64,000 nt of DNA from Sphaerodactylus townsendi (taxonomy: Eukaryota), in NCBI RefSeq assembly GCF_021028975.2, contig NC_059439.1, forward strand, positions 19,902,001-19,966,000, read 5' to 3'. Shown here one piece after another: positions 4,753 through 27,109 of this stretch (position 1 is the stretch's first letter; the number at the start of each line of letters is the position of its first letter). The translations under genes and the position numbers were made by a program. The notes under the pieces were generated by a model. The model saw only the letters and a program-made list of their open reading frames with translations. It was not told the origin of the DNA and searched no databases.

Positions 4753-4758
4753 AATAAA
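4753..4758 (+). terminator. Likely THAP7 polyadenylation signal
   Basis: AATAAA about 200 nt after the stop, followed by GT/T-rich sequence (ttgttttgta). Confidence 0.65.
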
Positions 4759-5311
4759 CATTGTTTTGTATAACTAGTTGCTCTCAGCTCAGGAGGAAAA
4801 CCAGTTTGGCTTTACCTCTTTTGAGCATCATTCTGTTTCAGTTTCAAAAATTCACAAATTCTTTGGAGGTACTCGATGAGGGAAATCATTTTACACATTA
4901 AGGAGCCTGTGAACAGATAGGCATCCAATGGCTTGTTTTGAGGATGTCACAGCCTAATAGAATGACATGATTTGCGATCCCGCTGGGCCAGTGCAGAGCA
5001 TAGAAAATCATGAAAAGGGTCTTCCATCAAAGGGAATAAAAACCACAGGTGTACAAAGACCAAGGAGCAGGTGGCCGCCTTGCTCTGGCTGTTCCCTTTT
5101 TCTTTTGAGCAGCTAATTTACCTTTTCCCTCCTGGTTCTGTGGGAAAGCGCGTTGCTAAAGCAAGCAAGGAGGAGAGAGGAATAGCGAGCAGGTCCTTTC
5201 CCCTGAACGTGTGGTTCCTGCTCCTTCCAGAATCTTCAGCCTGTTTATTCCTTCGTGTGGTTCCTGCCCCTTCCTCAGCCTGCTCAACCTTATCTTTAAG
5301 GACCTGGATAT

Positions 5312-5560
5312 AGAAGAAGAAGAGTTTGGATTTATACCCCATTTTTTTCTCCTGTAAGGAGACTCAAGGTGGCTTACAAGCTCCTCTCCCTTCCTCTTCC
5401 CACAGCAGACACCTTAACTAGCCCAAGGTCACCCAGCAGGAAGGTAGGAGTGCAGAAACACACCTGGTTCACCAGATAAGCCTCCGCCACTCAGGTGGAG
5501 GGGTGAGGAATCAAACCTGGTTCTCCAGATTAGAATCCACCGGCTCTTAGCCACTACACT
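5312..5560 (-). mobile_element. Squam3-like SINE
   Basis: Reverse-strand copy with (AAG)n tail. Confidence 0.8.
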
Positions 5561-5951
5561 AGTGGGTTAGGGATTGGCCTTTCTTTTGCATCAGGCCGAA
5601 TGATGGTCTGCTAGTTTTTGCTCCCAACGTTTCACTCGCATCTCCAGGTTAGTGTCCACCTGCTCTTCGCCACTACACACTGAATGCCCACTTTGCCATG
5701 GAAGCTCCCCAGGTGGTTTTGTGGTCACTGTTTCTCAGACACAGGGTTCGGAGATAAAAATGGAGGAGCAGTGAATAATAACGTGAGCTGCTTTGGGTCT
5801 CCGTTGTGCAGATAAGTGGAATGTAAATAATAAATAAAAACATTGGAGTAAAAGATGCAAGATTTGCACACCTCCTATAAGCTTATGATACATAAACATG
5901 GACTTCAGCATAATAAATAAGAACCCTGACGGGTCAGACCACGGTTCGCCT

Positions 5952-6255
5952 AAGAAGAAGAAGAGTTTGGATTTATATCCCCCCTTTCTCTCCTGCAGGA
6001 GACTCAAAGGGGCTTACAATCTCCTTGCCCTTCCCCCCCCCCCACAACAAACACCCTGTGAGGTAGGTGGGGCTGAGAGAGCTCCGAGAAGCTGTGACTA
6101 GCCCAAGGTCACCCAGCTGGCGTGTGTGGGAGTGCACAGGCTAATCTGAATTCCCCAGATAAGCCTCCACAGCTCAGGCGGCAGAGCTGGGAATCAAACC
6201 CGGTTCCTCCAGATTAGATACACGAGCTCTTAACCTCCTACGCCACTGCTGCTCC
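5952..6255 (-). mobile_element. tRNA-derived SINE, Squam3-like
   Basis: A box (GTGGCGTAGGAGG), B box (GGTTTGATTCCC) and (CTT)n tail. Confidence 0.85.
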
Positions 6256-8981
6256 CAGCATCAGTGACCAAACAAATAGCAGTTAACAAGCAGGGCACAG
6301 ATGCCGAAACTTTCCCATTCTTGCACCAGCACCTTTGAAACTGGCACTTTAAGGTACACTTTCTCTGATCATGGAGGTTCCATTTCACCATCTTTGATGT
6401 ATCTAATCATTGTTACAGCTGCCAACAAGCCTGTGGAAAAATGCCCTTTTAACAGAGGCTTAACGTGTGGGAATCTTCAGCTGAACCTTTTCATGGCGTC
6501 ACCAGATAGATAACATCCGTAAATCCTCTATTCAAGAGACAGGACATTGTTCACCCCCTCAAGCAGTTACTAGCCTATCCATGATGGAAATTCAGGTTGC
6601 CAGCTGGCATGTGTGTCGGGGAGGAGTGGCCGCACTCCTGTGCCTTTTAGATGTCCAGATAATTTAGCAGGGATGCTTTTCCCAGCACAGAGGAGAAACA
6701 ATGGGAAATCGGCTATACTTCTGCTTGCTGGGCAGCTCTTAAAGGAACAGAAACCCTGCACGCCCCAGTTGACTAGCAGCCTTAATGGCAAATAATGGTA
6801 CTGAAAAGCCAACATAAGAGCCTAAGAAATAGCCACGAGAGGGCAACATAGGATAGGAAATGGGAAAAGGCGGTGTCATTGATGGTATTTCGGACCAGCC
6901 CGGCGATGGCAAACCTGTGACACGTGACGAAATCCAGGACTTTGCTGCTTGCGATCAGAGCAAAGCTTCAGCAAACAAGGAGTTAACCGCCGTCGCTGAA
7001 AGGCAGTTATGACGACTGAGGCTGAGATTAAGCTTGGGAGAGCCACTCTTATCTCACCTCGGTCCTGGGTCCTTTTCCCTCCTAATAACTCCAGACAGCT
7101 GATTTCTCAAAGATTTATTGTAAAAGTTCAAAACAAAGAAATAAACATAAATGCTTTTAGAGAAATTGACCAGCTGTATGCTTCTTGTGGATCTCTTGGG
7201 ACCTCTAGCCAAGAGGTGCTTCTCTTAGCTTAGCCCATGATAGAGTCACCTAGGCTTTGTTCCCTCACTCTCCAAGAAAACTTTTCCCGCTCGCCATGAG
7301 GTTTCCAAAACCTTTGAAGTTTCATGCTAGCACCTCTGCATAGTTTCCTGTCCCCCCTCCAGGAGATCAAAAGGCAAAGATGCTTTTCACAGTCATATGT
7401 GACTTCCCTTTACTGTAGCGATAGCATCTTCCATGACACGCCCCCTTTTGGGATGAAGTCTGTAAACTCCATGTTCACATACTTCAGCTTCCTATTAATA
7501 CTGGTTGCATAATATCACATGTTTCTAGCTAATACATAGTTCAGCTAACTATTTTCCATCACATATCATGAAAGCAAGCCTGGGAGAGCCAATGCTTGTT
7601 TCATTAAAACCTGGGTTCTTTTCTCCAATAACTCCAACCAGCTGAGGTCTCAATGATTTTTATTGAAAAACAGAAAACAAAGAAATAAAACTTAGATGCA
7701 GTTAAGGGATTGCTTAGGTGGTCATATCCCTTTTCGTTCTTTGTCCCCATTCCGGGAACCCATGGCCCAGAGATGCTTCTCTGACCAGGTCTCAAGATGG
7801 AATTCTTAAAACCTTTGTTTCCCCCTTCTCAGGAAAACTCTGTTCAGGCCACGAGGTAACTTAGGCCTTTGAAGTTTCATCCTAGCACCTCTGCATAGTT
7901 TCCTGTCCTTCCTCCAGGAGATCAAAAGGCAAAGATGCTTTTCACAGTCATATAGAATTTTTGGGAAGAGAAGGCTGCATGCAGGTCGAGATGGTAACCA
8001 GAGAGTCTGATGCTGATGGCATGAGTGCTTTGGGAGAAGATGTGCCAGGATCCGGCAGGGAGAAGTCAAGGGGCCAGGGCTCAGGTCTTGAGCGGGGCGC
8101 CCAGAGGGCTTTCTCAAGCGGATGGCAGGAGCTCCTAAGAAGCTTTATGCTGCATCTACAGGCTATTTGGAATCTTTTGACAGCACAGCAGAGAAAACAA
8201 CTTCCAAAATTCGAAGCTGGAGGGGATCAAAGTCTCAAGGGAGGGAACGAAAAGCCTCCAGGTGGGAGAATGTTCCATTCAGATGCAAGTGAAGAGAAGC
8301 CTGGAATTTTCCATCACAGCAGTTGTGTAGGATAATGCTCATGTCTTTCTTTTCTAGACAAAAACTGCTATCTGAAACTAACCGGCCTTGCTCATCGTTG
8401 AGCTATGGACTTTTTTTTAACAACAACAACCTTTATTTGGCATTTAAAAATAGGTTCTAGAGCATTGCCAGACATTTTTGAAATACAAATCAAGAGTACA
8501 TTCAGAGCGCAGACAGGAAGACTATATAGCAGTATACATTACTTAGAAAGTTCTGTCACTTGTAAAAGAAATTTTGCTACTTTTTCCAAGAGCATGACAT
8601 CTGTGCTGTTTAACAGAAGCTCCACAACAGAACAGTCAGAGTCACTTTCAGATTTGTCTAGGGCCAGCCTGGGAGAGAAATTCCTAATGCCCACGTATCT
8701 GAGCTATGGACTTCTTCCACCTGATGGATCCCTTCCAGCCTACTTCAAAAATCTCTCCTCCCCATTACTGAGACGTTTCTTTATGCAAGCTGGTCTAAAT
8801 GGTCTCTCCTCTCCAGTTCTTGGTGGAAGATTCCTTCAGGTCCCATTACAAGCTAGAACTTGTCAGTGTTTGCCCAACCAAGTGGAAACAATTGCTCATA
8901 TTGTCGAAGGCTTTCACGGCCGGAATCACTTGGGTGCTGTGTGGTTTCCGGGCTGTATGGCCGTGTTCTAGCAGCATTCTC

Positions 8982-9833: not shown

Positions 9834-10476
9834 CAGGGACATAGGTATAGATTTTTTAGGGGGGGGGGGTTCGGGGGTGGGGCCACACCCCCACCCGCCC
9901 CTACAGGAGAGAAAGGGAGGATATAAATCCAAACTCTTCTTCTTCTTCTAAACTGAGGACCTCAGATTCTCCCTTTAAATCCATGCCAAGTGGGTGGATT
10001 TAAAACGAGAATCTGGGGAAATTTGGGGGGTGCCTGCTGTCAGGGGTGCAATTGTTAAGCTAGAAGCACCAAACTTTCAGGGTATCTTTAGGAGTCTCTC
10101 CTAATGATACCACCCAGGTTTGGTGAAGTTTGGTTCAGGGGGTCCAAAGTTATGGACCCTCAAAGGTGTAGCCCCCATCTCCTATTAGCTCCCATTGGAA
10201 ACAATGGAGGATGGGGGCACCCCCTTTGGGAGTCCATAACTTTGGACCCCCTGAACCAAACCACACCAAACCCGGGTAGTATCATCTGGAGAGTCCCCCA
10301 AACAATCCCTGAAAGTTTGGTGCTGCTAGTCCAAACAATGCGCCCCCTGCAGGCCAAAAACCGAAAAAGCACTAAAATGCTTAAAAAACCCACAAACGGG
10401 TGGGCGGAGCTTCGGACATGAATGGGGGGGGGGTTTCCAAACCCGAGAACCCCCCCCCCCCTTACCTACGTGCATG
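9834..10476 (-). mobile_element. Non-autonomous hAT-type element, inverted relative of 1324-2323
   Basis: Perfect 8-bp TSD gttgattt (9826-9833 and 10477-10484); shares internal sequence with 1324-2323; contains a SINE tail at about 9902-9949. Confidence 0.85.
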
Positions 10477-10844
10477 GTTGATTTTCTTTGCTTTGGAAAC
10501 CGTGTGCAACCTTTCCAGAATCGACAGCTGCAAAACAGATTTCTCCTTGGATTGCTAAATCCAGCTGCTCAGGAACCACTAGCTATTTCTTCTAACCAGG
10601 ATGGGACTTCCTGTTGAGCACCTGCAAACATTTTGACCCCCCCCCTTCCCCCCCCCCCCGGGTTTTCTGTGGGTTTTAAGATCATGACCCAAAACCATTT
10701 CAGCATCTCCTGTTCAGATTAAAAGCATATTATTTTCTGCTCATTTGGTTGGTTCTCACCTCTCCTGGGTTTGGATTTTCTTGGGACGGATGCAGCTACT
10801 TGCCAGGTTTACAAAACTCCTGAGTAGTGAGGAATTGGCAGTCC

Positions 10845-11031
10845 TGCTTCCGGCGGATCTGTCAACCGCTTTCACTTTCATGGTGCCGGAAAATATTCTA
10901 CAGTCACGTCTCTAGCTTTACAAGGACGGATGGGGAGGAGGAAGCTACTTCCTCCCTTTCCCAGTTCGTGGGACTTTCGTTTTCATTTGCTGAGTGCAGC
11001 CGAGGGAGAAGGGCCGCGAGAGGAGAGAGCG
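10845..11031 (+). promoter_or_regulatory. Candidate promoter and non-coding first exon of the PYD-B30.2 gene (IRF/ISRE, kB-like and ETS motifs)
   Basis: GCTTTCACTTTCA at 10868-10880 (reverse TGAAAGTGAAAGC, IRF-E). Inverted ETS pair GGAGGAAG-cta-CTTCCTCC at 10937-10955. GGGACTTTCG at 10970-10979 overlaps ACTTTCGTTTTC at 10973-10984 (ISRE-like). Consensus donor G|gtgagt at 11032; the PYD exon has an acceptor 21 nt before its ATG. Confidence 0.55.
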
Positions 11032-11329
11032 GTGAGTTTCCCCCAGTTCCTGACTTTTTCCAGCCTTCTTTTAAACTTCGTGGGGACCTAAGGATCAGGC
11101 AATCAGGGATCTAAAAGGATCTATTTCTGAAGCTCTGGGGAGCCACTGAGCATTCTTGACAGTTCAACGACATAAGGCAGCTTCGTTTAAAGGCATTCAA
11201 AGCGCATTACTTCCCGCACGCCACGTTTGTTTAGTCGCACTGTTACTTTGGCAGGTTCTAAGGCTGCTGGGGGCTGTCCTCTCTGGGATGGAAGGGTGGT
11301 GTAGTGTAGTGGTTAAGAGCAGGTGGGCT

Positions 11330-11725
11330 CAGAGGTGGGATCCAGCAGGTTCTCACAGGTTCCCGAGAGTAGGTTACTAATTATTTGTGTGTGCCGAGAG
11401 GGGGTTACTAATGGGTGATTTTGCCACGTGATTTTTGCCTTAGTTACGCCCCTCCTCTCAGCAGTAGCAGGCAGAACTTGAAGCAGTCTAGCAGGAGGTG
11501 CACCGGCGTGCGTGGCAGCCTGCGCCTGCATGCATTCGTTTCCCGCCCAAGGACCGGCGCAGCGGCTGCGTCCTTGCCACAGCCCCGGCCAGGAATGCCA
11601 CGCCCCGCCCCGAAATGCCCGGCCATGCCCCCGGAATGCCCCGCCCAGCCCCATTGGCGCTACGCCACAGTTTGAATCCCACCACCATGGGAACCTGTTA
11701 CTAAAATTTTTGGATCCCACCACTG
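11330..11725 (+). mobile_element. hAT-type MITE (CAGAGGTGGGATCC family) inserted in a SINE head
   Basis: TIRs CAGAGGTGGGATCC / GGATCCCACCACTG; TSD ggtgggct/ggtggact. Confidence 0.85.
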
Positions 11726-12410
11726 GGTGGACTCCTGCAGGGAGGCTAAGCAGTTCTGCAGCGATTGGCCAAATAGCTTCATGCCCACCACCAAGCTACT
11801 TCGCCTCAGGTGTCTCCCAGTGTGAGGCTGCACAGAATACCTACAAAGGTGAAAGCAGAGTTGCACTTACCTGTAGCTGCAGTTCATTGAGTGGGTTTCT
11901 GTGTAGACACACAGCCCTGCCTCCTACTGTGGGCTGCTATTTTTTTTACTGCACTACAACTGGCTTTCCAGGTGTTCCTTGTCTAGCTGGGGTGGCGGTA
12001 GGAGAACTGAGGGAATAGCATCACATGAACATTTGGACGAGAATCTTTTAGAGCCGCAGAGCAGGCAAAAAGCTTGAAAATCTTTCCGTGGCAGGCTGCT
12101 CAAGCGCAGTCCCAGTGTGTGTCTGGACAGAACCCCATTTGATGAGCTACCGTTACAGATAAGTGCAACTCTGTATTTATAATTGCTCTGTGAGTTTGTG
12201 GTACACATTCTGGTACTTGCCCTCAGTGATGACAGCAACATAGACAGAGCAGGCATTCCTTTAAAATATTTCCCAGCATCGCTTTCTCTTTCACAGCTTT
12301 CAGGCGCAGTATATTCATATTATTATGGTCATGTGATCAGAACTGAGCCCACTTTTTGGAGCACTCATAGGTGCTTTTCTCCACTCCAGAAACTTCGGCC
12401 TGGGCCCAAG

Positions 12411-12687
12411 ATGGCCGACACCGTCTGCTGCAAATTGGTGGACTACTTGGAAGAACTGACGGAGGAGGAATTCAAGAAGTTTAAGATGCACCTTGAGGAA
12501 TATCCGCTCGAGGAAGGCTACAAGCCCATACGGCGCTGTAAGACCGAGAAAGCCGGTGCCATCGAAATTGCCCGGCTCATGGTCAGAGCATATGAGGAGG
12601 CCATGGCGTTGCAGATGACAGTCAAAATCTTGGACAGGATAAACAAGAAGGATCTGTCAGCAAAAGTCAAGCAGGAGATGCCAGCCC
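12411..12687 (+). CDS. Pyrin domain (PYD) exon, NLRP3/NLRP12-like; first coding exon of a PYD-B30.2 gene
   Basis: Acceptor cttttctccactccag ends at 12389; Kozak aagATGG at 12411. MADTVCCKLVDYLEELTEEEFKKFKMHLEEYP...TEKA...INKKDLSAKVKQEMP has the PYD signature (LE.L...EFKKFK..L). Donor gtaagt at 12688, phase 1. Confidence 0.92.
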
Positions 12688-12800
12688 GTAAGTAAAAGGA
12701 GCCAGACCACAACAAAACTGTATTTTCTGAGGTTCTGTTCCTTCATAGGCCTTTAGTTCAGGTCACTATGGAACCTACCTGACTCATCAATATGTGTAGT

Positions 12801-13106
12801 GGAGCAGCAGTGGCGTAGGAGGTTAAGAGCTCATGTATCTAATCTGGAGGAACCAGGTTTGATTCCCAGCTCTGCCGCCTGAGCTGTGGAGGCTTATCTG
12901 GGGAATTCAGATTAGCCTGTACACTCCCACACACGCCAGCTGGGTGACCTTGGGCTAGTCACAGCTCTTTTGAGCTCTCTCAGCCCCACCCACCTCACAG
13001 GGTGTTTGTTGTGATGGGGGAAGGGCAAGGAGATTGTAAGCCCCTTTGAGTCTCCTGCTGGAGAGAAAGGGGGGATATAAATCCAAACTCTTCTTCTTCT
13101 TCTTCT
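12801..13106 (+). mobile_element. tRNA-derived SINE, Squam3-like
   Basis: Full-length copy with A/B boxes and (CTT)n tail. Confidence 0.85.
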
Positions 13107-14879
13107 ATCATACAAGAAATACATGGAATTTCACATGCTGTGCCACCTCCAGCTAGCTTGTTGTTGTTGTTGTTGTTGTTGTTATTGATACAAAAACAGT
13201 TATACACAGCAAACAAGATCAATATACTGGATTTTGTATTACATCACACGTCGGATATTATTTATTAAATTTATAGGCCGCCTCATCCCCGAAGGGCTCG
13301 AGGCGGCTCACAACACGGCTGTTTCAACAGCAAATTCATACGACATAAAAATAACCCATTAAAACTCAGCAGCAATTAATAATGAATAATTAAAACAGCA
13401 AGATTGTGTAACACGTATACACGTATACAGAGGCGCCCGATCTAAAGGCCAAAGGAAAAAAGAAAAAGAAAGAAGAAAGAAAGGGAGGAGATAGGCAGGG
13501 CCAAGATTGTTGTGCCAAGATTAAAGATGTCCTGGTTTAGAGCTAGATGGGGACAGACGTAATGCGAACACCAGTTGCCTTGTAGTCTCATCTTGGTCTC
13601 TTAAGACCTATATTGTCTGCTTGGACTGGCCTTTGGTCTCAGAAGATTTCAGGTGTTTTTGTTTAGAAGTAGTGTTGTATGAGCAATCCTTTGCCTCAGA
13701 GAGAGCAAAGCCCAGTCTTTTAAAACTGCACTATACATTTTAAAAATGTATAGTGATGCATAGACATGAATAGTGGGGTAGATAGGTTCTATTCTGTGTA
13801 GAGAATGGCACAAGACAGTGGATGGAGTGGGTAAGAATTGCCTCTTTTGGGGGGAGGGCACAACTGTTGTTCGTACTTCGAAATCCAAATCACACACAAA
13901 GACAGTAATTTGCCAAATAATAAGGTACTTATGTCATAGAAACTTCCGGGTTTTTTTTCCTATGCCGAATATTTACCCTTAAACCCTTCAGTTTCGGCAC
14001 CTGGCCTTTAAGCATCAGAATGAGATAAAATCTTTAGCATCATTATTTTTTTTAAAAAAAAAACCTATTTTCTGTATTGGATCTTAATTTAACCCCACTT
14101 TTTGTCAGTGGGGAGGGGGGTTCCGATTTATCTAGATAATTCTATCAAATGTTTCCAATTGTCCATGAACTTAAGTTATTTTCTTTAAGTAGCAAAGTTA
14201 ACTTGGCCATCTCGGCCAGCCTTCTTCACACACCATTCTTCAATTGTAGGAATAGCTGGGGTTTTCTATTTCTGCGCATTCAATATTCCTGTTACTGCTG
14301 TCATGTATAAAAACAAAATCTCCATGTTTTCTTTCTAGAGATCTGTCCCTAAGAATTGTGTAGCAAAGCAACAAGCACAGCCTGTTTATTGTTTTATGAG
14401 CTGATTGTCTGGAAATGCTCACCTTTTGGTTTTGAAACCAGATCTCTTATCCTGATTGCATCCACTTGTTAATCCGAGTGGTGCAAGAGACATTTCTCTT
14501 ATTTTGAAAACAATAGAAGCAGGGACATATGAAGCTGCCTCCTGCTGAGTCAGGTGATTGGTCTGTCAAAGCCACTATTGCCTTCTCTGACTGGCAGCAG
14601 CTCTCCACAGTTTCAGGAAGAGGTGTTCTCTCATGCCTAGTATCTGGTCCTTTTAACCATTGGATCTGTTGAGGACTGAACCTGGCCAATAAGATTCTCT
14701 AGCACTGAGACATGTTCCCTTTCCCTAAAAAGCAGAAAGATGTTGTGCGTGTGTGCGTAAGATATAGATAAATATACAAACACCATGTGTTTGTAGTATT
14801 TCAAATTAAATATTTAAAATATCTGTATTTGTATATGATATTTATTTCATTAACAAGAACAGCCATTTGTTTCTGACAG

Positions 14880-14990
14880 GCTTCTTTCAGCCTGCAAAGC
14901 CAGTGCCTGTGACCAAGGAAGAAAAACAAAAACAGAAAGAGAAGACAGAGTCGGATATGTATGAGCGGTTCTTCGGGACTCCAAAGAAAG
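14880..14990 (+). CDS. Charged linker exon of the PYD-B30.2 gene
   Basis: Acceptor tttgtttctgacag ends at 14879; donor AAG|gtctgt at 14991. 111 nt, phase 1/1, open: (R)FFQPAKPVPVTKEEKQKQKEKTESDMYERFFGTPKK. Joins both neighbouring exons in frame. Confidence 0.75.
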
Positions 14991-15026
14991 GTCTGTTTCT
15001 GGGGGGAAATTCAGAAGCTTCTAGGT

Positions 15027-15500
15027 CAGTGATGGCAAACCTTTTTGAGACCGAGTGCCCAAATTGCAACCCAAACCCCACTTATTTATCGCAAAGTGCC
15101 AACCTGGCAATTTAACCTGAATGCTGAAGTTTTAGTTTAGAAGAAACCGGTTGGCTCTCTTTTCCTCTGCCCCACCTGCTCGAGCAGGGACCAGCCTGCT
15201 CTAGCCACCAGCAAGTCCCACATGCACTGCTCTGTGCCTCTCTAGCATGTCTGCCTCCTCTGCGCCCGCCCCCCCCCCCAGGCAGCAGCCACCCGGAGCA
15301 CAGGCACCAGGCCCACCAGTCAACTTTCTTGTTCACCGTGGTGCACGCACGTCTTGCTCAGTGGCCCAGGCCAGCCTAGATGTGTGTGTGGGGGGGTGTG
15401 ATTTTCCGCCCCCCCACATGACAAACTCTGTGTGTGTGTGCCCACAGAGAGGGCTCCGAGTGCCACCTCTGGCACCCATGCCATAGGTTCGCCATCACTG
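15027..15500 (+). mobile_element. hAT-type MITE (CAGTGATGGC family)
   Basis: TIRs CAGTGATGGCAAACC / GGTTCGCCATCACTG; perfect TSD ttctaggt. Second copy at 52636-53113. Confidence 0.9.
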
Positions 15501-15716
15501 TTCTAGGTGGAGGTCACTGTAGAAAGGCTGCAGGCAACTTGGCCTTCCAAATGCATGTTAGCCCTCTGTTTTGAGAAACATGCAGTTCGATCTCGTCAGA
15601 CATTGGTCCTTGGATGGAAGACCATCAAGGAAAGCTCTGCCGGTGAAGGCAATGGTAAATTATGGCCAATTGTGCATGGAGCATCTCCTTGCCTCAAACA
15701 GCATTCCTTTGGCTCA

Positions 15717-16017
15717 GAGAGCCAGCGTGGTGTAGTGGTTAAGAGCAGGTGGATTCTAATCTGGAGAAACGGGTTTGATTCCTCACTCCTCCACCTGAGT
15801 GGCAGAGACGTGTCTGGTGAACCAGATGTGTTTCTGCACTCTTCCATTCCTGCTGGGTGACCTTGGACTAGTCACAGTTCTCTCTGAACTCTCTCAGCCC
15901 CACCTACCTCACAAGGTATCAGTTGTGGGGAGAGGAAGGGAAAGGAGCTCGTAAGCCCCCTTAAGTCTCCTTACAGGAGAGAAAGGTGGGGTATAAATCC
16001 AAACTCTTCTTCTTCTC
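15717..16017 (+). mobile_element. Squam3-like SINE
   Basis: Full-length copy; its 3' part is tandemly duplicated (15899-16182). Confidence 0.8.
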
Positions 16018-16182
16018 TAGATTTTCAATTATGCAACTGACCCACCTACCTCACAAGGTATCAGTTGTGGGGAGAGGAAGGGAAAGGAGCTCGTAAGCCC
16101 CCTTAAGTCTCCTTACAGGAGAGAAAGGTGGGGTATAAATCCAAACTCTTCTTCTTCTCTAGATTTTCAATTATGCAACTGA
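15899..16182 (+). repeat. Perfect 142-bp tandem duplication
   Basis: 15899-16040 equals 16041-16182 (SINE tail plus unique flank). Confidence 0.9.
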
Positions 16183-16921
16183 TCCAATGTATTCTCTGGG
16201 ATGGATTTTCAATTATGGAACTGTTCCTAAACCACCACACTTTCTGAAGGAGAATCCCCACATTTTCCAATTCCCTGACCATTTTTTTCCCTCTTTGCAT
16301 GGAAAGCGGAGCAGAACACCTTCTTCTATTTCTACTTCTCACTTGCCTTGAAAGCCCCTTGCCGAGGTCACCGTAAGTTGGCTGCAGCTTGCAAGCACTT
16401 TGTGCACACAATCCGGATCCCATTGCAGGACTGAGGAAAAGACTTCTCAAACTGCTGGCCATCTTGCTGAAGCATTCAGCAGCAGCAAAAAGAAAATCAA
16501 GTAGTAAACCACAGAGTAGAAGCAGTGAAAACCGGAAGCAGAGCCATTGAGGCCTGGAAAGAGACGATTGTTAGTGTTTGGCACCTAAAACAGCAGTGGG
16601 GTGTCACGGGCATAATGGTGGGAAGAGAGCTGCCACCGGTTCCTCGCAAGCACAAAGCCCTCAAGCAACCAACAGAGAAAACCAAATGTTTTCCCTCCAG
16701 AATGGCCAGCATTTACAGTGGCTTGCTATGTCGGGAAGAGCATTTTTTTAAAGGTGCATATAATAATAATAATTGTGTGGCATCAAGTTGTGACTGACTC
16801 ATGGTGACTCCAGAACTATGGGGTTTTCAAGGCAAGAGATGACCAGCAGAGGGGATTGCCAATACCTTCCTCTGCATAACACCCCCATTCTTTCTCAGTG
16901 GTGTCCCATCCAAGAACTAAT

Positions 16922-17160
16922 CATAAGAACATAAGAACAAGCCAGCTGGATCAGACCAGAGTCCATCTAGTCCAGCTCTCTGCTACTCGCAGTAGCCCAC
17001 CAGGTGCCTTTGGGAGCTCACGTGCAGGATGTGAAAGCAATGGCCTTCTGTGGCTGTTGCTCCCGAGCACCTGGACTGTTAAGGCATTTGCAATCTCAGA
17101 TCAAAGAGGATCAAGATTGGTAACCATGAATCGACTTCTCCATAAATCTGTCCAAGCCCC
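16922..17160 (-). mobile_element. CR1 3' tail in the last intron of the PYD-B30.2 gene
   Basis: cataagaacataagaacaagccagctggatcagacc..., same family as 45563 onward. Confidence 0.85.
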
Positions 17161-17622
17161 TAATCATGGCCAACCTCACATAAGCTTTAAAGTTCTGATG
17201 AGATTTCACTACTGGGGGCTACTCAAGCTGCTAAAACCTGCATATATACATTTATGCAAATACACATTCATCCTTCACCTTACAAGAAGATTTTTAAACA
17301 ACTGCTTTGTAGAATGGGGTGTACATGTGAGTGTTAGGGACGTCACTGATGCTAGCCAAGCAGCATGTGCAGTGTCCGTTTTTCCCATGCCCATCTTGAA
17401 ACCAAACCAAACCTCCATAGAACATTTTTTTTAAAACTTCCACCGGAAAGAGAGAAAGTGTATATAGGCTTGGAAGGTAGCACGGATATTATCAAACACC
17501 TCCACCACTGATAAAATAGTACATTCGTCTCCACCAATCCTAGTCTGATTTGAAAATATGTAAACAATAGTTTCTTAAGCTGATGAACATGGAAACACTC
17601 CCCTTTTTCCCTGTCTCTTTAG

Positions 17623-18143
17623 TGGAGGTAACACTGGATCCCAAAACAGCCTTCCCCACGCTTATCCTTTCTGAAGACCGGAAGAGCGTCCATCTGGGAG
17701 AAAGAGCCCAACCTCTGCCTGATAACCCTGAGCGATTCAATTTCTTACCCTGTGTTCTGGGAGCCGAAGGCATCACCTCTGGGACCCTGGAATGGGTGGT
17801 GAACGTGGGCAAGGCCAAAAGCTGGTCCATCGGTGCCGTTCGGGAATCAATTGATAGAAAATGGTACCTCTACATAACAGCCGAACAGGGGTTTTGGGTA
17901 CTGCAGCTGCATGAAGGAGAGTACACAGTCTCAACTACCCCATTCACCAACCTTTTCTTGTGGAAGTCGCCACAGAGAATCAGAGTGCATCTGGACTACG
18001 ACCGTGGTATCCTCTCCTTTTATGATGGTGACTCCATGGAGCACCTCTTTAGCTTCAACTATCCATTTTCCGAAAGGATGTTTCCCTTTTTTCAGGTCTG
18101 GGATACTGAGATCCCCTTGCAAATATGCCCCAGTGATTCCTAG
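17623..18143 (+). CDS. PRY-SPRY (B30.2) terminal exon of the PYD-B30.2 gene
   Basis: Strong acceptor ccctttttccctgtctctttag ends at 17622, phase 1. Motifs VTLDPKTA.PTLILSEDRKSV, LPDNPERF..LPCVLG.EG.TSG, GFWVLQL and RIRVHLDYDRGILSFYD. Stop TAG at 18141-18143; AATAAA at 18462-18467. Confidence 0.93.
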
Positions 18144-18959
18144 AGATAACATAATCAAGTCATTGCCAAAGGCTTTCATGGACGGAAACAACTGAGCGGT
18201 GTGGGTTTCCCGGGCTGTGTCTGATGGCTTTTGCTCTTGTTTCGCCTGCATCTATGGCTGGCATCTCCAGAGGCATGTCATAATAAGATGGGCTATGATG
18301 TATGGCCGAACAGCCTCATATCTTTGTGGCACCGGGATCATACACTTTATCAGTTTTCGCCAGCATGGCCGAGGTGGCCACGCTGGAAGGGGCTGATGGG
18401 ACTTGTAGTCCATAACATCTGGCGTGCCAAAGGTTCGCCACCACAGGCTAAGGAGAGGAGAAATAAATCTTATCGTGACCTGAAGAGATGCAGGTGAGAT
18501 AGTAGGGGGAGGTGAGATAGTAGGAGCAAAAACTACCAGACTATTATATGTAGTCAGTATAATAGTGGGAGGAGAGTTGCCACCACAGAAATCCTTCCAG
18601 TTCCTTCCAACCCTATGAAAACTCAGTAGGGTTTCTGATAATGGTAATATTGGAGCATGTATGTAGAAACTGTCCTGAGTCCTGCTTTCTTGGGGGAAAG
18701 GCAGGATAAAATCTCAAAACTAAAATAAACTAATGATTAGCAGTCCCTCTTGTCTTATGTTATGCACAAAGTTTTTGCATGTACTATTCATTGCTGCAAA
18801 TCACTGTGCGGAATAATTACAGGGATATGTGGACCAGCCCGTATATCACAACTTCTATACCCCTTCTGCACAGGCAGAATAATGCACTTTCAATCCACTT
18901 TCAATGCACTTTGAAGCTGTGCGGAAAAGCAAAATTCACTTGCAAACAATTGTGAATGT

Positions 18960-19248
18960 GGGGTGCTGTGTGGTTTCCGGGCTGTATGGCAAGATGTGGG
19001 GTGCTGTGTGGTTTCGGGCTGGCATGGCGTTCCTGGCAACATTCTCTCCTGGCCGTTTCACCTGCATCTGTGGTTGGCATCTTCCAAGGAGGATCTGATT
19101 ATAACAAGATCCTCTGAAGATGCCAGCCACAGGGCTGGCAAACGTCAGGAGAGAATGTTCAGATCCTCTGAAGATACTCAACCGGACCATACAGCCCGGA
19201 AACCACACAGCACCCCAGTGATTCCAGCCGTGAAAGCCTTCGACAATA
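18960..19248. mobile_element. Degenerate inverted Penelope termini inserted in a MITE
   Basis: Same arms as 8901-9138, with several indels. Confidence 0.7.
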
Positions 19249-20169
19249 AATTGTGAATGTGAATTGGAAGTGCATTATTCTGCCTGTCATGTATAAAAGG
19301 AAGGGGGGTATAATGCCTGTCTCTTTGTAGAAGCGCAAATCCCACTGTTTTTGACATCATACTAGAATTTATAGTTTAGACTCATTCTGTTAGGCTTAAC
19401 ACGTTTAAAAGAAACTGGCAGTTTGAGGATGTGCCCAGCAATGACAGCCTTAGTTGTACATCAAAAATATTTTTGGTCTGTTCATGTAAAAGTCGATTTT
19501 ATTATAAATATACAAATAAGTAAACACATAATATTTTCTAATTTGTTTTTCTTCTTCTAAGATTGAAATATATCTTGTCAAAATATTTTAGAGCTAGATT
19601 TCTGTCAGTAGCACATTAGAGACCAACAAAATTTTCAAAATATAATCTTTCAAGAGTCAAAATTTCCTTTAAGAACAGAATGCTAGATGGGATAAAAGAA
19701 GATAGAGTGGGGAGCTCTCTCTCAAAGTGGTATTACATTTATATGTTAATTTATTAAAGTATCAAGTTCCATCCGGTTGTTGTGTTTTATTTTCATGGTT
19801 AGGTAATTTACCTGTTTATAATTGTTGTGGGTTTTTTGTTTTCCTGTTTATCTTTTTCTTCCCTATATTTTGAGAAAATAAGTATATTTTTATGCAAAAG
19901 CAACTCAGCATCCCTGCGTATCTTTATGTCGTCATTGTGCAACTCTCTTATTTAAGAATTTATACCTTTTTAAAACCCATCAATTCCTCATTCTTCATCA
20001 GTAGACCTAAAAAGAACACATTTGTTCCAAGGTAAGTATGCACAGAATGGCACCCCGACAGAGCCATCCTATGCAGCGCTACACTGTTCTTGAGTCCATT
20101 GACATCAACAGTCTTAGAAAAGCAACACTCTATTTAGGAGGACACTAGCCAACCCTCCCACAATCAATA

Positions 20170-20468
20170 AGAAGAAGAAGAGGAGTTTGGATTTATATCC
20201 CCACTTTCTCTCCTGTATGGAGACTCAAAGGGATTTACAATCTCCTTTCCCTCCCCCACCCCCCCAACAACACCCTGTGAGGCGGGTGGGGCTGAGAGAG
20301 CTCCAAAGAACTGTGACTAGCCCAAGGTCACCCAGCTGGCATGAGTTGGAGTGCGCAAGCTAATCTGGTTCACCAGGTAAGCCTCCACAGCTCCAGTGGC
20401 AGAGCAGGGAAACAAACCTGGTTCTCCAGAATAGAGTGCACCTGCTCTTAACCTCTACACCACGCTGG
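20170..20468 (-). mobile_element. Squam3-like SINE (unit-B copy at about 28953-29250)
   Basis: Same family, directly downstream of the OR stop codon. Confidence 0.8.
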
Positions 20469-20528
20469 AAAACTCTGTCCACTTCACCCAACCACAGTGT
20501 TACAAATGCACAGAGTGATCATTGCCTT

Positions 20529-21464
20529 TCATTGCCGTCTCCTTCTGATTTTAGACAAGGCGCCTTTGACTTCCTTGTTCCTGAGGCTGTAAATGAGAGG
20601 ATTGGAGTAATGGAGTGTAACCAATTGCATAAAAGAAAGTAGTATCTTGTCACGGGTTGAACTACAGAGTTGCGTTGGGACTCAAATAAGCAAAGATAGC
20701 TGTGCCATAGCAGAGGGTGACCACGGTCAGGTGGGAGGTGCACGTGGAGAAGGCTCGGTGCCGGCCTTCTGAAGAGCGGATGCGCAAGATGGCTCCGATG
20801 ATATACACATAGGAAAGCATGACTAGACTACAGGGGATCAACAGCACAAGGACGCCAGCCACCATCAGTGAAATATCATTGACGAAAGTGTCCGAGCATG
20901 ACAGCTTGACCACAGCCAGGACTTCACACACAAAGTGATTGATGGTATTGAAGTGGCAGAAATGAAGGCACATGGTGAACGCAGTCTGCACCCCGGCATT
21001 GAGGAAGCCAACGAACCAGGAAGCGATTGCCAGTTGGATGCACACTCTCGGGCTCATGATGACCTTGTAATGCAGGCAAGTTGGCAGAGCGGCGACGATC
21101 TGTCGTAGGCCATGGCTGCCAACAAGATGAACTCGGTGCTGCCCAGGAACAAAGAGATGCAGAGCTGGGCCATGCATTGGTCAAAAGAGATAGTTTTGTG
21201 GCTGGTCAGGCAGTGGGCCAGCAACTGGGGCACCACACTTGTTGTGTAGCAGATGTCCAGGAAAGAGAGGTTGCTCAGGAAAAAGTACATAGGGCTGTTG
21301 AGCCGGGATGCGGCGCGGATGGTTGCTATGATGGTTTTATTGCCTGCCAGGGTGATGAGATACATGAAGAAAACCACCCCAAAGAGCCATAGATTAGTTC
21401 CTCGCACTCGAGAGAATCCCAAAAACACAAACTCTTGGACGCTTGTCTGATTGGGGGGTCTCAT
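20529..21464 (-). pseudogene. Olfactory receptor, class II family-2-like, frameshifted copy
   Basis: Same gene as 29312-30241 (MRPPNQTSVQEFVFLGFS..., MAYDR, KLSC, STCTSHL), but with several indels near 21075-21100 and 20600-20680 that split it over several ORFs. Confidence 0.85.
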
Positions 21465-21859
21465 CGTAGAGCTGAACGAGTGGAAACAGAATGGAAGTAT
21501 AACGCCTGGCTGGTACCTTGTGATTCGAATAGGTAGCCAATCTCCGTGGGATCTGGAAACCCTCCTGGAATTCGCCAGCTGATCTTCAGAAGACCAAGAT
21601 CAGTTCTCTAGGAGAAAATGGTGCTCGAGGGGTGACTTCATGGCATCACACCATGGGAACAGGAAAATAGGTTTGGAATATTATATTTGATACAAAAGAA
21701 TAAGGGATCTATATAAACTGAAAAGCAAGGAGTCTCCCTCTCAGTAGTAAAAAGTAACTGGTCAGAAAGTTACAAAGCAGGGAAGATCTTATCATATCAC
21801 TAAGGAATTGATAACATCCCGGTATAGGACTAAAAAGGCATGAGATAAAGCGTGTCTTA

Positions 21860-22002
21860 GGCTCATTCCGCACATGCAGAATAATGCACTTTCAAACTGC
21901 TTTCAGTGCTCTTTGAAGCTGTGCGGAATGGCAAAAATCCGCTTGCAAACAGTTGTGAAAGTGGTTTGAAAACGCATTATTTTGCGTGTGCAGAAGGGGC
22001 CC
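21860..22002. mobile_element. Palindromic MITE (GGCCCCTTCCGCACA family, Harbinger-like)
   Basis: TIR-bounded hairpin. Relatives at about 18860-19308, 27821-28099, 30586-30725, 46808-46957, 53511-53630, 54474-55098 (interrupted by a gap and a SINE) and 55256-55394. Confidence 0.7.
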
Positions 22003-22164
22003 TACAGTCCTAAAGGCATCCTCAGTCAAATAAGAGAGAATAAGATAATAAACACAGAAAGGAAGATGTCAAACGTTAGAGGAGAGATAAATCTAATCAG
22101 ATAATTAAAATGTGTTTTTCTATAGTTTAATGAACTCTGAAATGATAGTGAATACGAAAGGTAG

Positions 22165-23294
22165 TGTGGAGACGGGCCAGAATGTGTATAAAATTGTTTA
22201 ATCAAGGAAGATTGATTCAAATGAACCAGAGATTGCAATGAATCAAAATGGTGCTTCTGTGTAAGTGACCAGCAGAAACCTGCATGTTTGCAAAAAAAGG
22301 TCAAAAAGCCATGTTACCAGGTTTCTCAGTGAATATGCAGGCCAGCAAGATAACATCTTTGACATCTTGGCACTGAGGGCCTACGTGACAGCAGACAAGA
22401 TGCATTTTATATGACCTTGTTTTCTTGGTTAGGTTTTTGGGTTAGAACTAGCTAAACCAATGTGATTAGTTAAATTACAAAGTGGTTTTTCTATATAGTT
22501 AAATGAGCACAGAGAAATAATAATGGGAGATATTCACATGTATTAGTATTTCACTATAATTCTATTTTCTTAGAATCATTGTATAATTGTTAGAATCATG
22601 TTTTAACATTTCATGCTGGGGAATTGAAGAGAGGTTTTATGACCCAAAGGAATCCTGCATTGCCCTTTGGCGCATCTCTCTGAGCCAAACTAAAAGCAAA
22701 GCGAGTTTTCTTGAAGACAGTGAGCTAGTCCCTTTATATGGCAGTCCCCTTTGTATATGCGTATTAGGAGGCCATAAACCAACAGCACATGTAGTGTTTG
22801 AGTAACAGAATATACGTAGGAAATATAGGCTGCCTTCATGTGACCAGTTCTGACCAATTAGATTTTTTTAAGGTATATGGACTATAATACGTGAGAGTAG
22901 GGGAAAGGATTTTATGTGACGTCTTTATTTCTGCATCTATAAGAATTAAGACTCTTCCTCTAATTTCGCCATGCAAGCCTCCTTCTGGAGAGCCACCCAG
23001 GAGAAGTTGCAATCTCCTGTAACATTCTAAACATTGGATTAGCGCCTCTCCTTAGGGAGAGAGTCACTCTTCTGTAACTTATCTGTATTCTGTATAACGT
23101 TCTGAATTCTGGGTCTATATCACTCCGAGTGGGCACTGGGAGTGTTCACACTCTGTAACTCTGCTATATTCTGCCAAGTAAAACTGTCTGTTTGTTTCTC
23201 TAATATCAGATGCTCTTGTTTTTTATTTCTAGCTTAGTTTTTCTTTAAAACTAATCTTGCTGTGTAGGACCAGAGAAGCGGCTCTGGCCCCACA
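22165..23294. mobile_element. Solo LTR (1130 bp)
   Basis: TGTGG...CCACA termini; 4-bp TSD gtag (22161-22164 and 23295-23298). The empty site aaaggtaggcaaaag is present in unit B near 30881-30895. Confidence 0.88.
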
Positions 23295-24823: not shown

Positions 24824-25517
24824 ATCTAGTCCAGCACTCTCTGCCACCAAGAGTGGCCCCACCAGGTGCCCGTGGGGATTCACATTATGGGAAACATCAG
24901 GAGCCAACCGAGTGTGATAGGGAAGGGGCTGCCTACAAGTCCGATAGATAAATTAACATAATATTTCTCATGTGTCAACTTTGGCACAAGCAAAATAATA
25001 TTTAAAATGACATGATGAAACAGAAGATGAGTTTTCAGAGCGTGGGCTGGCAAAAGACATAGACTCCAAATAGTGCAAAACATCTGCAATCCCTTTATTT
25101 TTCTTGCCACTCTAATTTGATTTGTGAATTTGTCCAACAGTCAGATTCCACACATTTGTAGGAGATGATGATGTAAGCTGTTTTGGGCCCTCGTTGGGGA
25201 GAAAAGTAGGTTTTAAATATCTAAATAAGTTGGGGAATCCACAGATGAGCACCACCTTGCACAGGTAGAATCGCCTTCTGCTCCTACAAGGGACAGCTTT
25301 GGATCCCAACCAATTTATCTTGGGAAACCATCTGCCCCAGGGTGTGACTCATTGAGGTGGGATGGAGATCCCAGCATCCTGGTTTGCTGAAGCAATTGTA
25401 GTGGGCTTCACCTTTTACCAGCCACCCCCAAGATCATCCTTTCATCCCGCAAATTATGGGTGAACATTCATTACAATTCATTAAACAGTTTTTCAAAACC
25501 ACACAGCAGCAGCAGCA

Positions 25518-25821
25518 GAAGAAGAAGAGTTTGGATTTATATCCCCCCCCCCCCTTTCTCTCCTGTAAGGAGACTTAAGGTGGCTTGCAAGCTCCTTTCC
25601 CTTCCTCTCCCCACAACAAACACCTGGTGAAGTAGGTGGGGCTGAGAGAGTTCTGAAGAACTGTGACTAGTCCAAGGTCACCCAGCAGGAATGTAGGAGT
25701 GTAGAAACACATCTGGTTCACCAGAAAAGCCTCTCCACCCACTCAGGTGGAGGAGTGGGTATTCAATCCCAGTTCTCCAGATGAGAATCCACCAGCTCTT
25801 AACCATTACACCACACTGCTC
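25518..25821 (-). mobile_element. Squam3-like SINE (unit-B copy at about 32787-33088)
   Basis: Same family. Confidence 0.8.
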
Positions 25822-26827
25822 TTACGGGCATAACAGCTGCAAACCCAGACAGAATCATGACTACAATTGATATTTCCAGCTTCTTCTGTGTGGGATGGAA
25901 GGGTTCATACATACCTATGATATCAAATGTCAGGAGTGTACCTCAGCCACAATTTCTGCAGTGAGTCCTTCTTCAGTTCTGTGCTGGCTGTACTGTTAGA
26001 TCCTACTGAGGTACAATGCAGACTGTAACGAACCAGAATTCTCCTCTTCTGGAGTCTTCTACAGCTCTTTAGGTTGGATCCAGCCAACCTTGCTTGTTGT
26101 GAAAAAGAAAGGAGGGTCTCCTTTTGACCTCCCCCCAAATGCTATGTTAGGAATCACAAGAACTGCATGTTGTGGGGAACAGAGCAACAACAAGGAAAAG
26201 AACTGGGTCGGACGGAGTAAAATATCTGGCTGGTTCCTGCCCATGGATTCATATGCTGCACAAGATAATTGTTGTCATTGCACTGCCAAGAATTGGGAAG
26301 GAAGCAGCAACTTTTCATAAAGAATTAAAGGGAAGGTGTTTCCTCGGTTGGACTCCAGCTCTGCCCCATGGCTTACTTTGACTGGTATGCAAGCAAGGAG
26401 ATTTACTCAGATAACGTTAAAGAATATTTGAGCTGTTGCCAATGAACATATTGTGCCTAGAAGATAATTGAGTTGCAGTTCCTATTCTCCAGTGGAAAAT
26501 TAACTATGAAGTCTCTTGGGTTACAAACGGCAGGGCCAAAAGTTTTTGAAGTCAACTCAGATTTGTGCCAAAGGTCCAGTTTAAAGGGATTAGATTCTAC
26601 AACCCCATCCTGCTAAACTGGATCGTAAGATTTTTTTGCAACCAAGCCTTTGTCCAATGGCTTTTTGCAATAGGGAAAGATTTCCTTGGATGGAAGAACT
26701 TATTATTATTGGTTGATTTCAGTCAATGATGATAATAATAAGTTCTTCATTATTATCATTATTGATTGACTTCACAGCTGCCAGTTCTTTAGCTGGGTGT
26801 TGGCCTTTCATTACAATTCCAGTCTCC

Positions 26828-27109
26828 TGGAACCTCTACATAACAGCCGAACAGGGGTTTTGGGTACTGCAGCTGCATGAAGGAGAGTACACAGTCTCAA
26901 CTACCCCTTTCACCAACCTTTTCTTGTGGAAGTCACCACATAGAATCAGAGTGCATCTGGACTACGACCGTGGCATCCTCTCCTTTTATGATGGTGACTC
27001 CATGGAGCACCTCTTTAGCTTCAACTATCCATTTTCCGAAAGGATGTTTCCCTTTTTTCAGGTCTGGGATACTGAGATCCCCTTGCAAATATGCCCCAGT
27101 GATTCCTAG
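26828..27109 (+). pseudogene. Duplicated 3' half of the SPRY exon (truncated B30.2 copy)
   Basis: Near-identical to 17862-18143; from LYITAEQ onward the only amino-acid difference is SPQR vs SPHR. Lacks PRY and the first SPRY strands; begins at the tandem-duplication junction. Confidence 0.88.

Follow-up and report, generated by a model that had tools for sequence, protein, structure and literature searches.

Pyrin (TRIM20, the MEFV product) combines an N-terminal PYD, which recruits ASC, and a C-terminal B30.2 domain in a single cytosolic protein, with a long phospho-regulated linker, a B-box and a coiled coil between these end domains. AIM2 and the other mammalian PYHIN proteins (ALRs) join a PYD to a single ligand-binding domain, HIN-200, within ~300-340 aa and without an intrinsic oligomerizer, and AIM2 is activated through clustering on a polymeric ligand. 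In NLRP3 the PYD is accompanied by FISNA, NACHT and LRR regions, and POP1-4, which stem from sensor or adaptor PYDs, are primate-restricted near-copies of ~90-110 aa that resemble the PYDs they antagonize. A survey of inflammasome evolution places the start of pyrin-type sensors in mammals and, for reptiles, lists no sensors but those of the NLR and CARD8 types (PMC11258412).

The locus analyzed here, in the gecko Sphaerodactylus townsendi, holds a real, conserved reptile gene in which an NLRP3-like PYD is joined to a B30.2 domain by a 37-aa linker, with no other domain between them. The encoded protein has end domains of the kinds found in pyrin but none of its intervening modules, and it shares with AIM2 the pairing of a PYD with one ligand-binding domain, the size and the lack of an oligomerizer, but carries a B30.2 domain unrelated in sequence to HIN-200, on which ligand-templated activation would be only presumptive. 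Its PYD falls in one supported clade with that of NLRP3, and the PYD exon ends at an equivalent point, followed by a short linker exon, but FISNA, NACHT and LRRs are absent. BTN3A1, TRIM7 and TRIM39 provide the best sequence and fold matches to the B30.2 domain, but their Ig ectodomain, transmembrane segment or RING-B-box-coiled-coil are missing. As a small PYD protein without an oligomerizer it may be functionally analogous to the POPs as a regulator, yet unlike them it has a full B30.2 domain and dates to the lepidosaur-turtle ancestor.

Gene structure and window contents

The gene lies, like all features described below, on the plus strand of a 64-kb window, the whole stretch of DNA that was analyzed. 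Its coding exons specify the PYD (12411..12687; conserved start codon, 92 codons plus 1 nt, phase 1), a charged, predicted flexible linker (14880..14990; 111 nt, symmetric phase 1) and the B30.2 domain, PRY plus SPRY (17623..18143, stop codon included), and total 277+111+521 = 909 nt. Introns 1 (12688..14879, 2192 nt) and 2 (14991..17622, 2632 nt) are both GT-AG and repeat-rich, with interspersed families D1, D11 and D14, over which RNA read depth is very high. The donors read CCC/GTAAGT and AAG/GTCTGT and the acceptors, in exon order, ...TTTCTGACAG/ and ...CTCTTTAG/. Each exon is translated without stops (92, 36 and 172 whole codons plus two split codons), both junctions are in phase 1 with split codons C/GC and G/TG encoding Arg and Val, and the junction residues match '...EMPA-R-FFQP...' and '...KK-V-EVTLDP' in aligned orthologs. 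Pfam detects PYRIN (PF02758; 1.1e-25, 90.1 bits versus a cutoff of 22.9) and contiguous PRY (PF13765; 5.3e-23, 80.8 bits) and SPRY (PF00622; 5.1e-18, 65.7 bits) domains, all above cutoff; it returns no HIN-200, the sole other match under E 0.1 being a sub-cutoff DUF6493 on the PYD exon. A preliminary description of this DNA had proposed the three exons with their GT-AG sites, phases and summed length, the intronic repeats, and the layout of PYD, 37-aa linker and complete PRY-SPRY; coordinates, translations, splice sites, repeat families and domain matches all agree with it.

Each of the three exons is covered by RNA reads from a close relative (9, 11 and 6 reads at 12671, 14909 and 17852 in run X7), with zero depth in the unique intron bins 13494-14090 (intron 1) and 16479-16677 (intron 2). 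This coverage is depth per exon, and no exon-exon junction reads are visible in the read output. The RefSeq protein XP_048374253.1 ("TRIM39-like", 343 aa, S. townsendi) matches the three exons at 100% identity in tblastn. That the PYD and B30.2 exons form one gene rather than two, as first read, is supported by this protein, which spans all three, and by the recurrence of the same structure in >30 species.

The RefSeq model further includes a 5' exon at 10930..11031 (an upstream ATG plus 34 codons, donor GCG/GTGAGT), which protein residues 1-22 match at 100% in tblastn and which is spliced to an acceptor at 12390 (...CTCCACTCCAG/AAA), extending the PYD-bearing exon 5' of the conserved ATG by 12390..12410 and adding a 41-aa N-terminal extension. 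Other geckos do not keep this extension, their proteins having 302 aa and starting at the PYD Met, which makes the ATG at 12411 the conserved start. With the 5' exon, at least four exons make up the transcript. No DNA conservation of 10930-11031 was found against the upstream regions of Eublepharis and Paroedura, and the exon is probably 5'UTR with a species-specific uATG. At the other end, AATAAA motif matches at 18462 and 18724 (18462..18729) are candidate poly(A) signals, by which the candidate 3'UTR would measure ~0.3-0.6 kb.

When the 64 kb were searched by tblastn with 300 proteins, among them full-length NLRP3s, RING-B-box-CC TRIMs and Ig-bearing butyrophilins, matches were limited to the three exons, the one upstream exon and one truncated B30.2 duplicate. 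This search turned up no exon for a NACHT, LRR, RING, B-box, coiled coil or Ig domain in the window, a result that, together with the Pfam scans, bears out the earlier claim that the first five are absent. Full-length NLRP3 queries match the PYD exon alone in the 64 kb, ~60 TRIM queries reveal no B-box exon across it and Pfam scans no B-box, the gene itself has no Pfam match to TRIM_CC, and neither Pfam nor tblastn finds an Ig or transmembrane exon, the gecko protein beginning with the PYD. We accordingly rejected assignment to the TRIM E3 ligases ('TRIM39-like'), whose RING/B-box/coiled-coil tripartite motif is absent, to the butyrophilins, given the lack of an IgV/IgC ectodomain or transmembrane segment, and to the NLRP family, since NACHT and LRRs are missing although the PYD is NLRP3-type. 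The duplicate (26813..27109) carries the B30.2 exon's 3'-terminal 60%, without PRY or a matching acceptor, and differs from the original at 4 of 278 nt, homology beginning near 17862/26828; its sequence marks it as part of a recent tandem segmental duplication.

Affinities of the PYD and B30.2 domains

The PYD matches that of human NLRP3 at 69 bits (3e-18) versus 40 bits for the human pyrin PYD, and in a phylogenetic tree the gecko PYD, nested among family members, falls into one clade with the NLRP3 and NLRP4 PYDs of mammals (support 99/97). Identity to mammalian NLRP3 PYDs is 43-50%, six helices are present in the PYD of an ortholog's AF2 model, and the motif KKFKMHLE(D/E)YP...EGY..I.R, common to NLRP3 and ASC, is kept. 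We take this region to hold type-I interface residues of the ASC and NLRP3 filaments (family E14, K22/K23, R42, D49, which is Gly in S. townsendi, and E52), and the putative interface positions are partly conserved across the family, with variation at K22, K23, E14 and D49. Judged by these comparisons, the PYD is of NLRP3 type and not of pyrin type.

The B30.2 domain matches BTN3A1 (5.6e-42, 146 bits), TRIM7 (8e-40, 139 bits) and pyrin (8e-35, 119-123 bits); Foldseek gives a TM of ~0.8 to TRIM7, BTN3A1 and TRIM21, and in the B30.2 tree the reptile family forms a clade at 100, sister to sauropsid TRIM39/RFP/BTN-like domains. The name 'mini-pyrin', under which the gene had been introduced, does not survive these results: both the PYD and the B30.2 domain (BTN3A1, TRIM7 and sauropsid TRIM39/RFP-like) are nearer to non-pyrin relatives, so that the gene is an independent fusion of two domains with separate origins rather than a trimmed MEFV.

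In the alignment, the positions that we take to form the BTN3A1 phosphoantigen pocket (H351/H378/K393/R412/R418, whose spacing agrees) are substituted in the gecko as H351L, H378S, K393Y, R412T and R418F. A BTN3A1-type phosphoantigen sensor was rejected, the basic pocket being replaced by L, S, Y, T and F. Within the family, the B30.2 positions that vary most (171, 211, 231 and 237) correspond to BTN3A1 pocket residues H351, W391, R412 and R418, and the domain is strongly conserved outside the variable pocket sites. Snake tandem paralogs share 91-93% amino acid identity in the PYD versus 66-68% in the B30.2 domain, a pattern that fits a single signaling output with diversified recognition. In the ortholog's structure model the 37-aa linker scores a pLDDT below 50, and some snake and turtle gene models have a shorter linker or none; no similarity between the linker exon and NLRP3 exon 3 is detectable.

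A reptile-specific family and its teleost counterparts

PYD+PRY+SPRY orthologs of 284-313 aa occur in >30 reptile species among squamates, tuatara and turtles; searches recovered none from crocodilians, birds, mammals or amphibians. The gecko gene has the family's traits (~300 aa, three phase-1 coding exons, the B30.2 clade at 100), and inter-reptile DNA conservation is restricted to the three exons, with the PYD exon block in all five reptile loci compared. Estimates of dN/dS are 0.05-0.11 for the PYD, 0.08-0.16 for the B30.2 domain and ~0.32 for the linker, well below the value near 1 that, with disrupted orthologs, had been named as a refutation. Taken at the sequence level, these data mark the gene as functional and as a member of a reptile-specific family, on which purifying selection has acted since lepidosaurs and turtles shared an ancestor. 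Squamates possess ASC and crocodilians also keep it (PMC11258412); as no crocodilian ortholog was found, the gene's distribution is not cleanly matched to that of ASC.

The same domain pair is combined in teleost PYD-B30.2, PYD-CC-B30.2 ('pyrin-like') and NLR-B30.2 proteins, an Alosa PYD-B30.2 protein of 313 aa having the identical two-domain layout. However, the teleost PYDs group with fish PYDs and the B30.2 domains with fish TRIM39/A33-like domains, so that the fish PYD-B30.2 proteins are independent, convergent fusions and not orthologs. Our literature search found no paper characterizing the reptile family, nor any characterization of the fish proteins. The earlier word 'undescribed' nevertheless goes too far: the gene is already annotated in RefSeq in dozens of reptiles, as TRIM39-like, TRIM7-like, BTN3A1-like or ERMAP-like, and the convergent fish proteins exist. 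The TRIM39-like label reflects B30.2 similarity alone.

Sensor, regulator or other roles

We tentatively favor, at somewhat under an even chance, a reading in which the NLRP3-type PYD, short flexible linker and TRIM39/BTN-type B30.2 domain make up a ligand-clustered, ASC-recruiting sensor. The B30.2 domain would bind ligand at its canonical pocket, a multivalent or polymeric ligand would bring several molecules together, and the clustered PYDs would act as a seed recruiting the PYD of ASC, the presumed partner, and thence caspase-1. Such a mechanism would share its logic with AIM2, which pairs a PYD with a single ligand-binding domain, and not with pyrin or NLRP3, and the flexible, length-variable linker may let tethered PYDs arrange into a helix, by analogy with work on the NLRP3 PYD-FISNA linker (10.64898/2026.04.17.719140). 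The variable B30.2 pocket sites and the PYD-conserving snake paralogs favor this sensor. Against it count the lack of a NACHT or coiled coil, which leaves seeding wholly reliant on the postulated multivalent ligand, the low overall B30.2 dN/dS, unlike that of arms-race sensors such as TRIM5, the incomplete conservation of type-I interface positions and the mismatch with the distribution of ASC. A broader and more doubtful proposal would add to NLRPs, PYHINs and pyrin a fourth structural class of PYD sensor, present in reptiles: a PYD-B30.2 protein lacking both NACHT and coiled coil, which would seed ASC only when a multivalent ligand clusters its B30.2 pockets, with recognition diversified by tandem duplication in snakes and the same solution reached independently in teleosts.

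Strong purifying selection on the B30.2 domain fits a conserved endogenous partner, and the protein's lack of an oligomerization domain and its NLRP3-type PYD, given the likeness of POPs to their targets, suit a regulator or decoy: a monomer that caps or sequesters NLRP3/ASC PYD assemblies as pyrin-only proteins do, or whose B30.2 domain brings a bound protein to PYD complexes or removes it, tuning inflammasome output instead of sensing. We regard this as unlikely, if a serious contender, since 43-50% identity to the NLRP3 PYD is unlike the recent near-copies among POP decoys, the pocket variability and snake B30.2 divergence point to changing ligands, and a simple decoy would have no need of a 170-aa recognition domain that has persisted since lepidosaurs and turtles diverged. 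Distinctly improbable, in our estimate, is signaling independent of ASC, in which the PYD would recruit another PYD protein into a different cell-death or signaling pathway: a candidate partner exists in the PYD-bearing caspase-15 reported in green anole (PMC12292325), and unusual PYD fusions are many in reptile and amphibian genomes (e.g., PYD-VLIG in Mauremys), but an NLRP3-type PYD canonically pairs with ASC, which squamates retain. Descent from MEFV by loss of the B-box and coiled coil could be argued from the two kinds of end domain, the B30.2 match to pyrin and the neighboring olfactory receptor genes, which also border human MEFV. As human NLRP3 adjoins such a cluster too, this context does not discriminate, and with both domains nearer to other relatives, no B-box or coiled-coil remnant in the 64 kb and a mammalian origin of pyrin in the survey (PMC11258412), we consider a pyrin ortholog very improbable. 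Hardly credible at all is an artefact in which chance or annotation has brought unrelated exons together, or a pseudogene in decay; no junction-spanning reads are displayed and RefSeq models are computational, but exon structure and reading frame are identical in >30 species, dN/dS is ~0.1, no stops occur, and RNA covers exons and not introns.

The database names TRIM39-like, BTN3A1-like and ERMAP-like are wrong for this protein and have hidden the family from keyword and BLAST-by-name surveys. At this very small size, it would offer a tractable model for how many tethered PYDs, and how flexibly held, are needed to seed ASC. With its inclusion, the reptile repertoire would gain a B30.2-based PYD protein that purifying selection has preserved from the lepidosaur-turtle ancestor onward.

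Gene model and genomic setting

The three exons claimed in the preliminary description (12411-12687, 14880-14990 and 17623-18143, forward strand) are present and translate without a stop; their donors (CCC/GTAAGT and AAG/GTCTGT) and acceptors (ending in CAG and TAG behind pyrimidine tracts) are canonical as proposed, and both junctions are indeed phase 1, with split codons that encode Arg and Val, the residues found in orthologs. Searches with the window sequence were run exon by exon and never on a joined splice model, and full-length analyses used the database proteins that the searches recovered (P0001, P0208 and others). Pfam assigns exon 1 to a PYRIN domain (PYD; 1.1e-25) and exon 3 to PRY (5.3e-23) plus SPRY (5.1e-18), together a B30.2 domain, and matches nothing to the 36 residues of exon 2. 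A RefSeq protein of the gecko Sphaerodactylus townsendi, XP_048374253.1 (P0208, 343 aa), is 100% identical to the translations of all three exons and carries the name 'E3 ubiquitin-protein ligase TRIM39-like isoform X1'. Its model includes an extra 5' exon (10930-11031), in which an upstream ATG and 34 codons are spliced to an acceptor at 12390. The 41-residue N-terminal extension is missing from the 302-aa proteins of Gekko, Heteronotia, Euleptes and Eublepharis, and the DNA upstream of the PYD exon shows no conservation with that of Eublepharis or Paroedura. Judging from these comparisons, we take the 5' exon as 5'UTR with a lineage-specific upstream ATG, and the ATG at 12411 (CCCAAGATGG), the start originally put forward, as the conserved start codon. 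RefSeq isoform X2 (P0292) is one residue apart from X1, Q288H (window 17975 / 26941), the His codon being carried by a truncated duplicate (26941) and not by the gene copy (17975); since there is no visible way for a spliced transcript to yield this substitution, X2 may reflect an artefact of annotation or alignment between two identical repeats.

The reported lack of NACHT, LRR, RING, B-box and coiled-coil exons holds across the 64 kb, as a tblastn comparison of 300 proteins with the whole window, including full-length NLRP3s, about 60 RING-B-box-coiled-coil TRIMs and Ig-bearing butyrophilins, had matches only in the three exons, in one exon upstream of them and in a truncated B30.2 exon duplicate. 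The last (26813-27109) lacks both PRY and a matching acceptor and is therefore not a second gene. RNA-seq reads from a closely related species lie at low depth over all three exons and leave unique intron bins empty, a support that consists of exon-restricted coverage rather than of reads showing splicing directly; junctions 12687/14880 and 14990/17623 are absent among the joints listed, where repeat-derived joints dominate. Repeats within the introns have enormous read depth in DNA and RNA runs, and one RNA joint runs backwards by 123 (17046 to 16924), hinting at a variant of the repeat that is tandem or rearranged. One interspersed family has copies at 12803-13102, 36087-36386, 60982-61281 and 61579-61878, and further repeat pairs lie at 15022-15275 / 52631-52884 and 16922-17141 / 45563-45782.

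The flanking genes form a cluster of olfactory receptors, as they do at the Eublepharis and Paroedura orthologs. Recent duplication in tandem has given the window second copies of the 3' part of the B30.2 exon and of the receptor gene downstream; the duplicated segments (17862-22200 vs 26828-30900 and 24920-26409 vs 32191-33682; 95-100% identity) are offset by about 8.8-9.0 kb and by 7.27 kb. Each of the two receptor pairs, 29312-30241 (-) with 20662-21464 (-) and 48590-49546 (+) with 36534-37536 (-), comprises one intact gene (309 aa and 318 aa) and a near-identical frameshifted partner. Elsewhere in the window, ORFs at 4033-4551 and 8405-8968 (upstream) and at 56194-56757 have no Pfam domain, and 45084-46557 is open on both strands (229 aa minus, 136 aa plus), presumably, by eye, a candidate reverse-transcriptase C-terminus of a non-LTR retrotransposon. 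N runs at ~34150-34450, ~40270-40500 and ~54510-54650 mark assembly gaps or masking.

A conserved and mis-annotated reptile family

An architecture search for PYD, PRY and SPRY in sauropsids, which the preliminary description had called for, recovered proteins of 284-313 aa when annotated proteins were searched first with the B30.2 exon and afterwards with a profile of 21 sequences. The family spans lizards (geckos, an amphisbaenian, skinks, cordylids, lacertids, agamids, iguanians and varanids), many snakes, the tuatara, and cryptodiran and pleurodiran turtles, and no member was found among the annotated proteins of crocodilians, birds, mammals or amphibians. DNA similarity between reptiles is confined to exactly the three coding exons, a layout common to Eublepharis, Paroedura, Rhineura, Candoia and a sea turtle. 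Nei-Gojobori dN/dS, computed per exon with summed counts and without joining sequences, is 0.09, 0.33 and 0.08 for PYD, linker and B30.2, respectively, against Eublepharis, and 0.11, 0.32 and 0.13 against Paroedura; against Rhineura and the turtle Eretmochelys (dS saturated), where the linker has no match, PYD and B30.2 give 0.05 and 0.16, and 0.11 and 0.14. Values of 0.05-0.16 in both domains, well below 1, bear out the proposed selection check and exclude a pseudogene or chance ORF.

The orthologs are named TRIM39-like, TRIM7-like, BTN3A1-like, BTN1A1-like or ERMAP-like in the databases, names that are artefacts of best-hit naming from the B30.2 domain. Literature searches for a PYD-linker-B30.2 architecture found no description. 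The earlier word 'undescribed' is nevertheless too strong, as RefSeq already has the sequences from many species; what emerges is a family that is mis-annotated and uncharacterised, and not a new gene. Pyrin itself first appears in mammals according to a 2024 survey (PMC11258412).

Origin of the two domains

Among solved structures the PYD is best matched by that of human NLRP3 (3e-18, 69 bits), with NLRP4, pyrin (3.5e-9) and ASC trailing well behind, and its 43-50% identity to NLRP3 ends at the exon boundary; the linker exon has no significant similarity to the exon-3 linker of NLRP3. In a PYD tree built without squamate NLRP3 PYDs (the NLRP3 PYD-region homologs among the matches listed are mammalian only), the family groups with mammalian NLRP3 and NLRP4 PYDs in a clade supported at 99/97, to the exclusion of ASC and all fish PYDs. 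The B30.2 domain is closest to BTN3A1 (5.6e-42), TRIM7 (8e-40) and BTN2A1, followed by pyrin at 8e-35; in the B30.2 tree the family is monophyletic (100) and weakly (83) sister to sauropsid TRIM39/RFP/TRIM11-like and avian BTN-like domains. On these two sets of matches, the gene joins a PYD exon of NLRP3 type to a B30.2 exon of TRIM/BTN type, a fusion made easy by junctions that are all phase 1. The earlier 'mini-pyrin' framing does not survive this comparison: with a PYD nearer NLRP3 and a B30.2 nearer BTN3A1/TRIM7 than pyrin, the gene is not a trimmed MEFV. Derivation from a fish-type NLRP3-B30.2 protein through internal deletion is unlikely, judging from the grouping of the B30.2 with the TRIM39/RFP/BTN type in the tree.

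Teleosts have PYD-B30.2 (Alosa, 313 aa), PYD-coiled-coil-B30.2 ('pyrin-like') and PYD-2xB30.2 proteins, and both domains of these proteins cluster with fish paralogs in their respective trees, so that the architecture has evolved repeatedly. Unusual PYD fusions elsewhere include PYD-histone H1 (the fish Pempheris) and PYD-VLIG GTPase (the turtle Mauremys), alongside a DED-DDE transposase-PYD mixture and proteins with as many as 11 PYDs in tandem (the database protein set P0112, P0147, P0053 and P0095).

Putative recognition surface and signalling

All five mapped residues of the BTN3A1 phosphoantigen pocket are replaced in the gene's B30.2, which discards BTN3A1-like phosphoantigen sensing. 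The family's most variable B30.2 columns (171, 211, 231 and 237) correspond precisely to H351, W391, R412 and R418 of that pocket, a coincidence suggesting that the canonical pocket is the functional, lineage-tuned surface. Snakes have two copies of the gene in tandem (in Candoia aspera, at 4084-7158 and 10001-15887 of its locus, L005); the product of one copy has 286 aa and a short linker, that of the other about 301-313 aa. The copies form two clades predating the boa-colubrid split, and their PYDs are 91-93% identical and their B30.2 domains only 66-68%, a pattern that would fit one output with two specificities.

The AlphaFold2 model of the Eublepharis ortholog (87% identical) comprises a six-helix PYD and a B30.2 sandwich that are not confidently packed against each other, and between them a linker with pLDDT <50; Foldseek confirms the B30.2 fold. 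The linker evolves ~3x faster than both domains, is shortened in Hemicordylus and one snake paralog, and is missing from one turtle model, as would fit skipping of the symmetric 111-nt exon. From sequence and model, it appears to behave as a tether, not an oligomeriser. The PYD retains the KKFKMHLE(D/E)YP and EGY..I.R motifs common to NLRP3 and ASC, and most family members, though not all, preserve several charged positions that we take to be type-I filament contacts. ASC is present in squamates; a predicted complex of the Hemicordylus PYD (P0013 17-110) with the Hemicordylus ASC PYD (P0119 1-95) scored 0.00 and counts neither way.

By their defining tests the gene stands apart from pyrin/TRIM20, TRIM ligases, butyrophilins, NLRPs and PYHINs, sharing one domain with each by our count; with pyrin the likeness is one of domain kinds, and a TRIM E3 ligase is excluded as the gene has no RING. 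The main rival reading, a PYD decoy or regulator, draws on the protein's inability to oligomerise by itself and on the strong constraint on its B30.2. Sequence evidence and analogy lead us to favour, over such a decoy, a recognition protein that signals through its PYD upon ligand clustering, with AIM2 the nearest functional likeness in layout: a multivalent ligand would cluster the protein, the PYDs of the clustered molecules would then signal on the AIM2 principle, and their likeliest partner would be ASC.
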